Shown in pieces: positions 33,541-43,360 of a DNA stretch of 45,339 bases (positions are counted from its first letter, which is position 1; each line of letters starts with the position of its first letter). The DNA is taken from NCBI RefSeq assembly GCF_006345805.1, contig NW_021834702.1:1-45339 (forward strand), written 5' to 3'. Source of the DNA: Octopus sinensis (lineage: Eukaryota). The notes under the pieces are model-generated. The model was not told the DNA's origin, did not search any database, and worked only from the letters and a program-made list of their open reading frames with translations. The position numbers and the translations under genes were made by a program.

Positions 33541-33672
33541 ATTTTATGGAAGGAGCTTCGACAGGACTAGAACTGTTTCATTCAAAAGAAATCATCAGGA
33601 AATTAATTTACTCTGCTATGTATTGAGTACCTTATTTACTGTGGTTAACCCCGACTCAACCCGGGACCTACA
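33541..33672. repeat. Interspersed repeat E, copy A, between (TA)n tracts
   Basis: Near-identical to 43201-43360 except for a 13-nt versus 40-nt segment. Confidence 0.9.
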
Positions 33673-34026
33673 TATATATATAGTGTATATATATATATGT
33701 GTATGTATACATTATATATAAATACATATATACATTATATATATATATATATATATAATATATATATATATATATAAGTATATACATATATATATATATA
33801 TATATATATATATATATATATATGTGTGTGTGTGTGTGTATATATACATGTATATATTTATCTATAAATGTGTGTGTGTATGTGTGTGTGAGCGTGTGTG
33901 TGTGTGGTATTTTTGCTTTATATAATGTACTGCGCTCATAACTTTTGCTAACGTATCGCACTTTCTGACACACCTTTTGGAGTGTGTGTGGTGTGTGTGT
34001 GTGTACTTGTGTATGCGCGCGCGCGA

Positions 34027-34337
34027 AATTTGAACTCAGAACGTAAAGGGAAACGAAATACTGCTAAGCATTTCGCCCGGGACGGGGAGGGGGTGTCTAA
34101 CGTTTCTTATTTCTTTATGGCCCACAAGGGGTTAAACATAGAGGGGACAAACAAGAACAGACAAAGGGATTAAGTCGATTACATCGACCCCAGTGCGTAA
34201 CTGGTATTTATTTAATCGACCCCGAAAGGATGAAAGGCAAAGTCGACCTCGGCGGAATTTGGACTCAGAACGTAGCGGCAGACGAAATATTGCTAAGCAT
34301 TTCGCGCGGCGTGCTAACCTTTCTGCTAGCTCGCCAC
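34027..34337 (-). mobile_element. SINE family A dimer
   Basis: Head, body, then a second head fragment joined at gaaataag|aaacgttag. Confidence 0.85.
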
Positions 34338-35934
34338 TTTTATTGTTGTTACTATTATGCGCCTAATTAGTGATGATGATGACGACGACGACAATGATGA
34401 CGATGGTGACTTGATGACGACAAGGAGGAGGAGGAAGAAGAATAGTCAAATGTGGGTAACAATTTGTTTGATGGTGAATCGTGGTAATGGTCATAGGTAT
34501 ATACAAATAGTTTGTGAGCAAGAGGTAAAAGAAAATTCGTAAGATTTCCATTGATATTACAGGGAGCACTACATAACACTAAGGTAAAGTCCTTTAGGCG
34601 TAATATAAGCCAGGCAAACTGAATAATAAAAGTAATAATTTAAATGAGGACTGGAGCGTCGTGCCTTCTAATCATAACATCTGAAGAAGCCAATGGACTA
34701 TACGATTACTATTACATATTTCCATATTTTATGTATTACATAACAGTATAAGAGATATGGAATAAATGATATCGTCCGTTTACGGAAACAATTGTGATGT
34801 CGATTTGGCTTCTTTCCTAATTTAGATTATTGTACTGATTTACCTGGGATATATAATGCCGTTCAAGACAGCCCTGAGGAAAACTGCAGGGATTTTTTCC
34901 AGTTCTGGATTTGCTAAATAAGTAAAAAAAAAAACCTGCTGAAGATTTCCACTTTTTCCCTGGTTTGTTTGTTGTTATTTAAAGTGAAATAAATTGAAAA
35001 CAAAGTTTTATATTGATATAAAATAGACAAATACAGGTATATCAAATGTCATACACTATAGATATTTGTTTTATTGAAACATAATTCCACCTCTAGAGAA
35101 TGCGTCACGATTACTAAATGGCAATTAAAACCAGCGCCTATTGAGAAAGGGGTATAATCTCAACATTCAAAAGTTCTCCAAAACTCACATGTCAATAAGG
35201 AAAGAACATGCTTCCTGTCTGGAGATCAGATGACAATTGTGGGCGCGTGATCTGGCAATTCTCCAACCTTATCTGCAGTGACTAAGGAAGTTCGACTTAT
35301 ACAAAAAATCAGTTGAACACATACGAGAAACAATTCACAGTGACCAGTGGCTTGTATTTGGACAAGTTTTTGTGGACACTGCAAATAATATTTTAATATA
35401 TTATTTCATATTGAGAACATATTTTGCCTTTATGTTTCGTCAGTTGGACAATGCAAGGATCGAGGGCCCACTAATGCGTTTGCTGTGTTTAGAACATCAG
35501 TTAACCTTAATCCGGATACGGCTGTGATTGGTTCAGGCTGGTAGCAGCAGTAGAAGCAGCAGCAGCAGTATTATTAGTAGTAGTAGCAGTAATAGCAGCA
35601 GTAATTGTTTACGGTACGATTGTGTATTTCGTAGTGATGGACATGAGTTTGCAATAATGCTGACAATAGCGACGAGTTGATGATTCATGGCGAGGCAGCA
35701 TAATAATAATAATAATGATGATGATGTCATGGAAACTTTGGAAGGAGTCCAGAATTTACTCGAGGAAAAATACTTGCAACAAAGACTATGACTGTGTTTT
35801 GGGAGTGACATTGTTTTTATTGGTTGGATTATCATACACAAATGCATACTTATATACATACGTACGCAATACATACATACATACATACATGCATACATAC
35901 AGACATACATGCATGCGTACATATATACATAGAG

Positions 35935-36330
35935 ACTAGAAACTGTGTACAGTTGTGGAAATCAGTTGCTCAGCGGATGTTAACATAAAGCAGAAGATCA
36001 GTGAAAAAGAGAATACCCACGCTGAACTATTGAAAAATCTGTTGTCATTCTATCCGGATTACAAGTTCAGGTCTATACCTGTAATTATTGGGGCATTGGG
36101 ATATGTAACACACTGCCTAAATACCAATATTGGAAAATTAGGCTTCTCAAAACCAGAACGGAGAAAGCTAATTCGAAGATACGGATCCAAGCGATCACTG
36201 GAACTGTAAACGTCTGTAAAACTTTCCAGATGTTTACCATTTAAATATATATATGAGCGTGTCTAGATATCCAGGTATATCTATGTATATATACATACAT
36301 AAAGCAAAACATACAAATCTGCACGTATAC
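35935..36330 (+). mobile_element. 3' fragment of an RLE non-LTR retrotransposon (R4/Dong-like)
   Basis: VEISCSADVNIKQKISEKE...YKFRSIPVIIGALGYV; flanked by (CATA)n-rich sequence. Confidence 0.8.
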
Positions 36331-36529
36331 ATACACACACATATATATATATATATATATATATATATATATATATATATATATATATAATATATATATT
36401 ATATATATATATATATATATATATATAATATATATATATATACATACATACATAATACATACATACATACATACATACATACATACATACATACTACATA
36501 CATACATACATGTGTGTGTTAGATAACTT

Positions 36530-40192: not shown

Positions 40193-40875
40193 TAGTAGTA
40201 ACATTTTAAATTATTCAAGAGTGGATTGTACCTTATATAAATGTAGCTGTGATTATCTTTAACGGGTGAATTAGAGGGAGAGGAACAGCGACTATAACCG
40301 TACCCAGGTCCTCTATGACTGGTGTAAGGTATGAAGATCGGCAATTCGATCAAGTCCGAATGCTTGTAGCAGTAGGAATCCGGTAAAAACAATCGACTGT
40401 TATGTAGTAGTGTTAAACAAAGAGTCCGATTACGTCTGTTACCAAAAGACAGGAAAGAGCTACTCTGAAGAGCTTCCGTACAGTTACCACCTACTAAATT
40501 CCACACTATATCCATGTCATTCAGTGAGATCGAACTCGAAATGTCGTAATTGAAACTAAGCTTCTCAGCACACAGCTGCATCTGTATCCACATTGCAATT
40601 AAGTCTGTGAAATACTTAAAATGAAAGGAAAAAAAAAACGTTAGCAAAAACCCATATATGCTCGGATATGACGTAAAATTTTAAGACGAGAAACCTTGGT
40701 TATTCATTAATGTTTAGAGAGAGTAAATATATCCTTCATCAATGGTTTAACTGAATTCGTGAATATCTTCAACAACTGTTTATATAGTTTTTCAAGAAAA
40801 GATTTAATATAATTCCATTTCACTCAGCATAGAAAAGACTATCCTCGATACAGCCGCCATTGCAGTTGCTAACAG

Positions 40876-41277
40876 TAGTAGTAGTAGTAGTAGTAGTAGT
40901 AGTAGTAGTAGTAGTAGTAGTAGTAGTAGTAGTAGTAGTAGTAGCAGCAGCAGCATGAATAGTCACACTAATATGGATTTCGTGGTCAGTAGACGATTAT
41001 GTTGAAAGCACCGACAGCAACGTCACCAGTATATAGTGTGTATGTGTGTGCGTGTATGTGTGTGTGTGTGTGTGTGTGTGTGTGTGTGTGTGAGTATACA
41101 CACACACACACACATATACATACAGACACACACACACACACACACTGACTGACTGTCAGACAGAAACGGGGAGATAGATTGATAGATAGATAGATAGATA
41201 GATAGATAGATAGATAGATAGATAGATAGATAGATAGATAGATAGATAGATAGATAGATAGATAGATAGATAGATAA
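40876..41277. repeat. (TAG)n, (TG)n/(CA)n and (GATA)n microsatellites
   Basis: Direct reading. Confidence 0.95.
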
Positions 41278-42446
41278 AACTACGCTGTTCTTCGCCATTT
41301 TTTTTATGAAGGCTTTCAGTAGCTCGATTCATCTACTATTAAGCACAGCCTTATATAAATAACCTCGACTTTTATCTCCACCACTACCACCACTACTACC
41401 ACCAAGCCACCACCACCACCACCACCACCACCATAATTTCTGCTACAATAGTAACATCAAAACCCTTCACCTCTTCCCCTTTCTACAACATATCAAGTCC
41501 CAGAAGAACCAAACAAGGTAGATCTTTCAAACTCGTGACACACACCAACGCCATGGGCAGCACCACTTAACAACAGATAACCCTTAACTCCGACAACCGC
41601 TGACGATTAAACAAACTCTAACTTCCTGCTTCACAGATCTTCGTGTACGTGTGTGTGTGAATATATATATATATATATATATATATATATATATACATAC
41701 ACATACGCATACACCTATGTAACGCCTGGCTCTCTTTCTTCGACATTTCCTTTGTGACACCTGACCAAGTTTTGTTTTTTGTTTTGTTTTTTTTTTTATT
41801 TTTGCTCTTTAGTCAATTGCTAAATACATCTGACATATTTGTGTCTTTTCCTCACCTGGATGGAACATCAAAAGTTCAAACTTCCACCGAGCGACGTTTC
41901 ACAAATCATCCAACTCTCCGGCAGTCGGCCATATCTGTCTATCTGTCTGTCTGTCTGTCTATCAGTTTCTCTCCCCCCCTTCTCACATTTTCTCTGTCCT
42001 TCTTTCTCTCTACCTGTTGACATTTAGTCCTTCGTGCAGCTGCACCACACGCCGAACGACCTCTGACACACGTTAGGTAATTAATACAAGCGAATACGGA
42101 ATATGTTTTTGATGGCAATTTATGTGTGGTAGTCTTTCTTTTTTTTTTTTTTTTGCTTTTCTTAAATCTAGATTGATAGCAGTATACTGCTTTGAAACCA
42201 GATTCAAATGTTTACGCAATCATTAATTCTTAAAACTGGATTCTTAAATAATCGGCAGAGAGATGGAGATTGTTATATTTCTTACGGCTCTTTACCTTTC
42301 AGGGCTCAAATTTTACCGAGCCCACCATCTTTCCGAAAATTATGAAATATAAACACCAATCAGCTACTAGAGATGATACACTTGACTAACTTAGTGCCGT
42401 AAATTCCAAGACTGGTGTCTATATTAGAAACAGTTATAGTTCAAGA

Positions 42447-42915
42447 AGGGTAGATTAGAGAATCGGTAGAGCGTCGGACAAATACTTTTCGGTGTCTGTT
42501 CCATCTCTTTGAGTTCTAAATTCAAATGCCCTCGATATCAATTTTCCCTCTCATGCTTCCGGATTCAGTCCCACAGCGTGGCACCTTGGGCAAGTGTCTT
42601 CTACTATAGCCTCCGGCCGATCAAAGCCTTGTCAGTGGATCTGGTAGACAGAAACTGAAAGAAGCCCGTTGCATATTTATATATAAATATATATGTGTGT
42701 GTGCGTGTGTGTGTTTGTGTGTCTGTGTTTGTTCCCCCCACCAACATCGCTTGACAACCGATGGTGGTGTGTATACGCCCCCGTAAATTGGCGTTTCGGC
42801 AAAAGAGACCGATAGAATAAGTACTAGGCTTACAAACAATAAGTCCTGGGTTCGATTTGCTCGACTAAAAGCAATGCTCCAGTATGGCCACAGTCAAATG
42901 TCTGAAACAAGTAAA
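42447..42915 (+). mobile_element. SINE B body preceded by a decayed SINE A-type head
   Basis: agaatcggtagagcgtcggacaaat...ttctaaattcaaat, then ggattcagtcccacagcgtggcaccttgggcaagtg... Confidence 0.7.
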
Positions 42916-43194
42916 AGAGTATAAATACTTTTGCATTCACATCTCTAGTACCTCTAGTACATTTATTTACCTTCATATAAGTATATATGTATGTGTATGC
43001 ATGTGTATGTATACACACACACATATACATATACACATGTATATATATGTATATATATGTGTGTGTATATGTGTTTATACATGTTATATATTGTTACATA
43101 TAGTTACATACATACATGCATACATACATACATATATACATAACATACATATATATATATTATATATATATATATATATATATATATATATATA

Positions 43195-43360
43195 TAATTT
43201 ATTTTATAGAAGGAGCTTCTACAGGACTAGAACTGTTTCATTCAAATGAAACAGTTCTAGTCCTGTAGAAGCTCCTTCTATAAAATAAATTAATTTACTC
43301 TGCTATGTATTGAGTACCTTATTTACTGTGGTTAACCCCGACTCAACCCGGGACCTACAT
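43195..43360. repeat. Interspersed repeat E, copy B, containing a perfect 47-bp-arm hairpin
   Basis: Arms 43195-43241 and 43246-43292 around spacer tcaa. Confidence 0.95.

Follow-up and report, generated by a model that had tools for sequence, protein, structure and literature searches.

A perfect 98-nt palindrome in one of two copies of a short Octopus sinensis repeat, a candidate product of short-range template switching

The quasi-palindrome model is attributed to Ripley in 1982, and Loytynoja and Goldman are said to have treated short-range template-switch mutations in 2017; insertions made by Pol theta or templated by flanking sequence have reportedly been described by Kent et al. in 2016 and in work on SD-MMEJ. 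Each human carries 872-1121 high-quality template-switch mutations (TSMs), of which the longest in complex sequence measures 90 bp (Loytynoja 2022, PMC9435742). The four-point model used to recognise them asks that one reverse-complement copy of nearby sequence explain the differences fully, that the copied fragment have a length of 8-10 nt or more, include every one of the four bases and not be of low complexity, that the flanks be at least 95% identical, and that the switch points lie less than 250 bp apart; polarisation by an outgroup or by ancestral reconstruction, and support from reads or genotyping, complete the criteria (PMC9435742). The creation of a perfect stem in one step is documented (PMC10710096), and so are Pol-theta deletion-insertions ('delins') with flank-templated inserts, reverse-complement snap-back products among them (PMC5068794). 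The template-switch mechanism is already well described, and the locus presented here adds no new mechanism or functional element.

The locus belongs to a short repeat, E, found twice in the window, by which we mean the whole 45,339-nt stretch of contig NW_021834702.1 that was analysed. Copy B resembles the TSMs of PMC9435742 in that a short segment appears to have been exchanged in one step for the reverse complement of adjacent sequence, a quasi-palindrome is perfected and extended, microhomology lies at the switch points, and the 40-48 nt involved fall within the lengths reported. In contrast to TSM studies, which used orthologous lineages or phased haplotypes, the event in B is read from two paralogous copies, and its ancestral state is just a proxy; unlike most reported TSMs, it also has longer arms and ends exactly at a TA microsatellite. 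A perfect stem from a single mutation, seen against a hairpin-less 'before' state, likewise recalls the TSM-born hairpins and de novo miRNA genes of Monttinen et al. (2023, PMC10710096), whereas typical animal miRNA precursors differ from the B stem, which is 47-48 bp long, perfect, closed by a 2-4-nt loop and known from sequence alone.

The two copies of repeat E and their setting

Both copies were recovered by blastn and nhmmer, and their boundaries were fixed by base-by-base walking:

33541-33672, forward strand: repeat E copy A, 132 nt, the hairpin-less, 'before-like' state
33587-33599, forward strand: segment private to A, 13 nt, AGAAATCATCAGG, which B would have lost
43201-43359, forward strand: repeat E copy B, 159 nt, the hairpin-bearing, 'after' state
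43247-43286, forward strand: segment private to B, 40 nt, the exact reverse complement of 43201-43240

The copies lie 9.7 kb apart, and A represents the unmutated state if the template-switch reading is confirmed. Aligned base by base, they are identical at 117 of the 119 positions that they share. The left shared block of 46 nt (A 33541-33586, B 43201-43246) accounts for both differences, G at 33548 against A at 43208 and G at 33560 against T at 43220, and is thus 95.7% identical (44/46). The downstream block (A 33600-33672, B 43287-43359) is identical throughout (73/73), and 10 further TA-repeat bases match beyond it, in keeping with the roughly 80 bp that a preliminary description had found identical by eye. 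That description also had the 13 nt of A replaced in B by 40 nt complementary to B's own upstream sequence, and on both points it proved right, as all 40 bases, which include all four nucleotides, pair with 43201-43240.

The copies are embedded in TA-rich tracts, directly downstream of copies of a SINE-like repeat, X:

33127-33494, forward strand: repeat X upstream of A, context only, its head reaching about 33087 and its 3' end entering the TA tract that holds E
33487-33542, no strand assigned: (TA)n tract left of A
33672-33866, no strand assigned: long (TA)n tract right of A
42552-42927, forward strand: repeat X upstream of B, sharing 84% identity with the X next to A, context only
43023-43196, no strand assigned: degenerate TA/TATG microsatellite with a 3' end of pure (TA)n, adjoining the left arm of the palindrome in B (Tandem Repeats Finder)
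43359-43384, no strand assigned: short (TA)n tract right of B (Tandem Repeats Finder)

The X copies are the older of the two repeats: the E copies differ at 2/119 positions and the X copies at about 61/381 (p = 5e-6). A false haplotype duplication was considered and rejected, as A and B have unrelated outer flanks and identity between the neighbouring X copies is just 84%. A translated search and a DNA scan with X gave no match, the source species lying outside the collections reached, and a literature search for the X sequence was likewise negative. Within the window, blastn and nhmmer found no third copy of E, diverged copies included, and exact-pattern scans with three segments of E found no match in viral, metagenome or prokaryotic genome contigs. 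The open frame across E matched nothing in protein collections, and an exact look-up of the ORFs spanning the A and B loci returned no record. An ENA contig (ERZ25066847) retrieved for comparison carries no repeat of the window and so belongs to another organism; the repeats themselves have what looks like a cephalopod character.

The palindrome in copy B

The private segment of B makes up most of the right arm of a longer palindrome, which is perfect and occupies 98 nt as two 48-nt arms around a 2-nt centre:

43195-43242, forward strand: left (source) arm, homologous to A over 43201-43242
43243-43244, forward strand: centre, CA, with an effective loop of TCAA
43245-43292, forward strand: right arm, complementary to 43195-43242 at 48/48 positions

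The first six bases of the left arm (TAATTT, 43195-43200) belong to the flank of B itself and lie at the border of the TA tract. When folded, the hairpin has 47 bp and a 4-nt loop; the '47-bp arms' first reported are therefore right for the folded form, while full complementarity extends each arm to 48 nt. Because the palindrome is perfect, its right arm carries the B allele at both sites at which A and B differ, as had been recognised at the outset, and it was therefore copied in cis from B itself.

Chance is excluded as the source of this structure. It is the only complex perfect inverted repeat of more than 15 nt in the 45-kb window, the next-longest perfect inverted repeat outside microsatellites has 15-nt arms, and in locally shuffled sequence perfect arms never exceeded 12 nt. 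The copied fragment is not of low complexity (arm dinucleotide entropy, 3.53 bits). The hairpin has a folding energy of -50.9 kcal/mol as DNA and -75.4 kcal/mol as RNA, with a z-score of about -22, and the corresponding region of A, with a z-score of about 0, folds no better than its shuffles.

A probable template switch in the B lineage

With moderate confidence, we regard a single short-range template switch in the B lineage as the best explanation of the difference between the copies. Copy B would formerly have been like copy A. During rightward synthesis through B, the growing 3' end (...GTTTCATTCAAA) would have left its template, plausibly owing to a stall beside the structure-prone (TA)n tract, and would have annealed again, a few bases back, to a template of its own sense, the pairing being supplied by the small quasi-palindrome TTTCATT/AAAGAAA. 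This second template could be either the nascent strand itself, in a folded state, or the strand on the other side of the fork; the 2-nt centre makes an intramolecular fold-back sterically awkward, so that an inter-strand switch must be assumed. Backward copying would then have run over 40-48 nt, as far as the edge of the TA tract, at which point the new 3' end (...AAATTA) would have re-paired with the AAATTA lying 13 nt past the departure point and normal synthesis would have resumed. The net outcome, in one step, would be the loss of 13 nt, the gain of 40 nt and a perfect 98-nt palindrome, with the mismatch of the quasi-palindrome corrected along the way (A to T at 43247). We infer both the involvement of a replicative polymerase and any role of the TA tract.

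The sequence holds a short match at each of the two junctions:

33580-33595, forward strand: quasi-palindrome TTTCATT-CA-AAAGAAA in A, matching at 6/7 positions, read from the sequence and taken as the putative departure point
43287-43292, forward strand: return microhomology AAATTA, also present in A (33600-33605) and able to pair with TAATTT at 43195-43200

Among unmasked window positions, 0.3% show a 6/7 match across a 2-nt spacer; the frequency of a 6/6 return match is 0.05%, and 0.36% if the hexamer is all-AT. The folding energy of the quasi-palindrome is negligible (-0.6 kcal/mol, with 75/200 shuffles folding equally well). The preliminary description had already placed a quasi-palindrome at the switch point, AAATTA at the return point and the event next to a TA tract; all three are present, the tract being the microsatellite that abuts the left arm. 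Its reading of the locus as fitting short-range template switching also stands, given 40 nt that are a 100% inverted copy, carry the B alleles and have microhomology at both junctions. Set beside the thresholds of the four-point model (PMC9435742), the copied fragment measures 40 nt, the flanks are identical at 44/46 and 73/73 positions, and all four points fall within 43195-43293.

A count of similar events, which had also been proposed, could be run within the window: of 13 complex insertions of at least 8 nt between repeat copies, a local inverted template exists for B alone (1/13), and nothing indicates that fold-back events are common in this window.

Rival origins and possible significance

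A replication-fork switch, snap-back repair by Pol theta and a reverse-transcriptase fold-back would be expected to leave the same scar in the sequence. Of the other routes to the palindrome, the one that survives best, although we think it unlikely, derives B from double-strand-break repair by Pol-theta snap-back and alternative end joining. A break inside E, beside the fragile TA tract, would allow the 3' end to snap back through 1-2 nt of homology, and the extended end would anneal to the other break end through AAATTA. Formally the scar is indeed a 'delins', with 13 nt lost, an insert templated by the flank and microhomology at both junctions, and in this it is like the deletions with reverse-complement flank-templated insertions of Pol-theta end joining (van Schendel et al., 2016, PMC5068794). 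In C. elegans, however, templated inserts average about 10 bp and have an error rate of about 1 in 30, with snap-back a minor class (PMC5068794). The 40-nt insert of B is unusually long by comparison, four times the typical size, and it is error-free, an outcome that we compute to be expected just about 26% of the time.

The opposite direction of change, in which the long hairpin would be the older state of E or of the common ancestor of A and B, seems less likely again. A later deletion-insertion would have removed 35-40 nt of the right arm from copy A and brought in 8-13 unrelated bases, and the left flank of A would have been overwritten by expansion of the TA repeat. Long perfect palindromes are unstable and readily broken or deleted, A keeps 7 nt (6/7) from the start of the would-be right arm and 6 nt from its end, and no outgroup contradicts this polarity, E having two copies in the window and none in the collections scanned. 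The junction microhomologies do not polarise the event, as in the reverse direction they are simply retained palindrome sequence. Nevertheless, reverse polarity needs an extra event, the prior creation of the palindrome, and a deletion that left intact the palindrome centre, the usual place for a hairpin to be cut. It also leaves the filler in A without a template and not obtainable from the arm by deletion alone. Extended to a 19-mer, the 13 nt of A recur nowhere else in the window even when 3 mismatches are allowed, and they show no direct or inverted match of k at least 7 within about 350 nt of either locus; they contain GG, and the right arm of B does not. With no template for them in the window, A is therefore neither a templated product nor a simple hairpin deletion. 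Copy A as itself a template-switch product is rejected on the same ground, as its private segment has no local template. Under reverse polarity, moreover, all three A/B substitutions in hairpin-derived sequence would fall on the A lineage and none on the 96 arm bases of B, a pattern with a value of 0.125 in a simple equal-rate model, against 0.58 in the forward direction. Parsimony and this substitution pattern (about 4-5:1) favour B as the derived copy without proving it.

An assembly or sequencing artefact, through chimeric fold-back reads or local mis-polishing beside the TA microsatellite, we consider very unlikely. Amplification and some long-read libraries are known to generate fold-back chimeras, and the site abuts a long TA tract that is hard to assemble. 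Such fold-backs normally continue to the end of the read, however, and an exact return after 40 nt at a 6-nt microhomology, with 13 nt deleted, is not typical of them; a consensus assembly would require many identical fold-back reads, and the window has no other odd palindromes.

Slimmer still is the prospect that the fold-back took place at retroposition, with the reverse transcriptase switching from RNA to nascent cDNA and back to RNA, so that B was born with its hairpin. This assumes that E is a short minus-strand retroposon with a (TA)n tail, whose first-strand cDNA would be made from left to right. The direction of copying agrees with such synthesis, reverse transcriptases readily snap back and switch templates, and the presence of both E copies in TA tracts beside older X SINEs fits independent insertions of a young element. 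On the other hand, the E copies have no recognisable target-site duplications, E has no tRNA or Rfam match and just two copies, and going back to the RNA once 40-48 nt of cDNA had been copied would be a complicated route.

The idea that a palindromic mobile element entered B is effectively refuted: at 98 nt the hairpin is a compact and perfect inverted repeat and, like foldback elements and palindromic MITEs, has a long structure resembling perfect terminal inverted repeats within repetitive DNA, but its left arm is ancestral, homologous to A over 42 nt and hence not inserted, 13 nt were lost, there is no target-site duplication, and no palindrome family, nor any other copy of the palindrome, was found in the window or in the collections scanned.

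Returning to the template switch in B, if it is confirmed, the locus would be a very clean natural case of one replication or repair error that makes a long perfect hairpin from non-palindromic DNA. It suggests that young repeat copies could serve as internal before/after controls for counting template switches where outgroups are poor, and that the same copies could help to test whether TA microsatellites promote template switching. The hairpin itself is most likely a scar, neutral, of recent origin and potentially unstable, with no function implied. We give scarcely any credence to the idea that it is transcribed and diced to small RNAs, and that repeats in TA microsatellites form a nursery for hairpin-RNA genes, although paralogous copies would in that case offer a ready before/after series for the frequency of such events. 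Across the window, no Rfam family matched at its gathering score and no tRNA was found. The best match below threshold was to mir-5014 (65.7 bits against a threshold of 101), a score shared by many unrelated hairpin models and so expected of any generic perfect stem. Elsewhere in the window, a reverse transcriptase-like ORF at 6824-7171 has ENA protein matches of 59-71% identity.

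Comparison of the two copies of repeat E

Both blastn and nhmmer recover just two copies of the short repeat E in the window, each on the + strand and each flanked on both sides by TA microsatellite (33487-33866 around copy A; 43023-43384 around copy B).

Copies of repeat E in the window (blastn and nhmmer)
33541-33672, + strand: copy A, without the hairpin
43201-43359, + strand: copy B, with the hairpin

Block limits were set by walking base by base along both copies. A left block of 46 nt with two differences (33548 G in A and 43208 A in B; 33560 G in A and 43220 T in B) is followed by 13 nt private to A (33587-33599, AGAAATCATCAGG) or by 40 nt private to B (43247-43286), and then by a right block of 73 identical nt and 10 more identical TA-repeat bases. 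In B, these 40 nt exactly reverse-complement 43201-43240. This agrees with the preliminary description, which had reported 13 nt in A replaced by a 40-nt inverted copy in B next to a TA tract, identity over roughly 80 bp downstream, and 47-bp arms, the last matching the stem length that we obtained on folding.

With the flanking bases common to A included, complementarity is perfect between 43195-43242 and 43245-43292, giving 48-nt arms around a 2-nt centre, which fold into a stem of 47 bp closed by a 4-nt loop (-50.9 kcal/mol as DNA, -75.4 as RNA; z about -22), whereas for the corresponding region of A shuffled sequence folds equally well. The palindrome in B is real and beyond chance. It is the sole perfect non-microsatellite inverted repeat in the window with arms longer than 15 nt, the second-ranked (27158-27193) having 15-nt arms (TTAAGAAACACACAA) and a 6-nt spacer, and the longest arms in local shuffles were at most 12 nt. 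The A-to-T change that makes the palindrome perfect also introduces a TGA (43245-43249) ending a mechanical ORF (42884-43249), and the same frame in copy A is open through the entire repeat (ORF 33440-33721); both ORFs cross a microsatellite and are almost certainly non-coding.

A probable short-range template switch and its possible agents

The 98-nt perfect palindrome of B is best read as the product of one short-range template switch, with A keeping the earlier state. Taking A as a stand-in for the earlier state of B, a 3’ end finishing in TTCAAA would have detached from its template and paired anew a few bases behind, on a same-sense template, at TTTCATT-CA-AAAGAAA; 40-48 nt would then have been copied backwards as far as the edge of the TA tract, and AAATTA would have mediated the return to the original template 13 nt downstream of the departure. 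Both the quasi-palindrome at the switch point and the AAATTA at the return, which the preliminary description had pointed out, are present in A. The former is complementary at 6/7 positions, a match that occurs at 0.3% of sites, and 6-nt return matches occur at 0.05-0.36% of sites. As a folded structure the quasi-palindrome of A is negligible; the term microhomology suits it better than that of a pre-formed hairpin.

The change in B has the defining pattern of template-switch mutations, which make perfect stems in a single step (PMC10710096); each human individual carries about a thousand of them, up to 90 bp long in complex sequence (PMC9435742). One such event would account for the whole A/B pattern, and the earlier proposal of short-range switching at quasi-palindromes is supported. 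Among the 13 complex insertions of at least 8 nt between repeat copies in the window, only that in B has a local inverted template.

We prefer a replication fork as the site at which the scar was made, although a fork, Pol-theta and a reverse transcriptase would all leave the same scar, which the sequence does not tell apart. Provided that E is a retroposon on the minus strand and has TA as its tail, a reverse transcriptase folding back at insertion can produce it. Snap-back synthesis by Pol-theta at a break can do so as well, but in C. elegans its templated inserts average about 10 bp, against 40 nt in B, the error rate is about 1 in 30, and inserts of the snap-back type are a minor class (PMC5068794); an error-free 40-mer would be expected about 26% of the time. 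An assembly artefact is unlikely, as the fold-back in B rejoins the original sequence precisely, at microhomology, which is not what chimeric fold-back reads produce, though the palindrome does adjoin a long TA tract. Read as a short-range template switch, B is a textbook-quality fresh instance of a known mutational process; the event brings no new mechanism and implies no function for the hairpin.

Direction of the change

Direction is the weak point of this reading, and we consider B likely to be the derived copy. The right arm of B copies the left arm of the same repeat copy and with it both B alleles, as had been remarked previously, and no template for the 13 nt of A was found in the window in either orientation; both observations support a derived B. 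Deletion alone could not have yielded these 13 nt from the arm. A change in the reverse direction costs one extra event, because the palindrome must first be made, and it places all three substitutions in hairpin-derived sequence on the A lineage and none on the 96 arm bases of B, a pattern with a value of 0.125 under a simple model, against 0.58 if B is derived. The junction microhomologies give no help, since they would be merely retained arm sequence in the reverse case, and the perfection of the arms is weakly informative because the copies differ by just 1.7%. No further copy of E was found in the viral, metagenome and prokaryotic genome contigs scanned or by protein search; repeat X, abundant in the window, was likewise not found in the public DNA and protein collections searched. 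The one related contig obtained, from ERZ25066847, contains none of the window's repeats and comes from a different organism.

Repeat X and other features of the window

Each copy of E sits downstream of one copy of X, a SINE-like repeat of about 370-400 nt with a tRNA-like-looking head, internal TG/TA microsatellite and a tail ending in ...GTCAAATGACTGAAACAAGTAAAAG. ARAGORN and Rfam made no call on the head, and the translation of X had no match among 5.8 billion proteins.

Copies of repeat X in the window
33127-33494, + strand: upstream of E copy A
42552-42927, + strand: upstream of E copy B
39806-40190 (also delimited as 39806-40030), - strand: no E after it
3554-3658, - strand: no E after it

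The last two copies indicate that E is not a regular component of X. The E copies are 98.3% identical, against 84% for the adjacent X copies (2/119 and about 61/381 differences; p = 5e-6), and the outer flanks of A and B are unrelated. Given these three observations, E looks like a younger sequence that would have arrived separately, on two occasions settling in TA microsatellite where an older X ends. The identity gap may reflect either a young element targeting TA tracts or conversion between the E copies. By eye, the minus-strand start of E (TGTAGGTCCCGGGTTGAGTCGGGGTTAACCA..., 33600-33672 and 43287-43359) resembles the T-arm and CCA-bearing acceptor end of a tRNA and, with about 13/16 matches, also the head of X; a tRNA search and Rfam gave no support for the tRNA likeness.

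The window looks like intergenic DNA from a repeat-rich animal genome: it is AT-rich (G+C about 37%), crowded with SINE-like repeats and with microsatellites of TA, TG, TACA and ATT, and yielded no tRNA genes and no Rfam families at gathering score. Its repeats may be cephalopod-like.

Other features of the window
4666-5528, 5940-6110, 17835-18080, 23127-23560, 29659-29934, 34108-34374, 38614-39233, 45229-45339, both orientations: abundant repeat of about 184-nt period
25360-25603 and 26181-26262: long GGT/GGC/GCT trinucleotide arrays
44637-44981, + strand: ORF fragment with a sub-threshold Mos1/mariner transposase HTH_48 match (23 bits; cut-off 24.1)
6824-7171, - strand: 115-aa ORF without a Pfam match; ENA proteins 59-71% identical

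Copies of the 184-nt-period repeat are 88-95% alike, often in tandem dimers or trimers spaced at 183-184 nt. The ORF fragment at 44637-44981 is probably a decayed mariner-type transposon. The ENA proteins similar to the 115-aa ORF are encoded beside RVT_1 genes on a contig of 1.95 Mb from ERZ25066847, with 72% DNA identity between the ORF and that contig, and the ORF is probably the C-terminal portion of a retrotransposon ORF.
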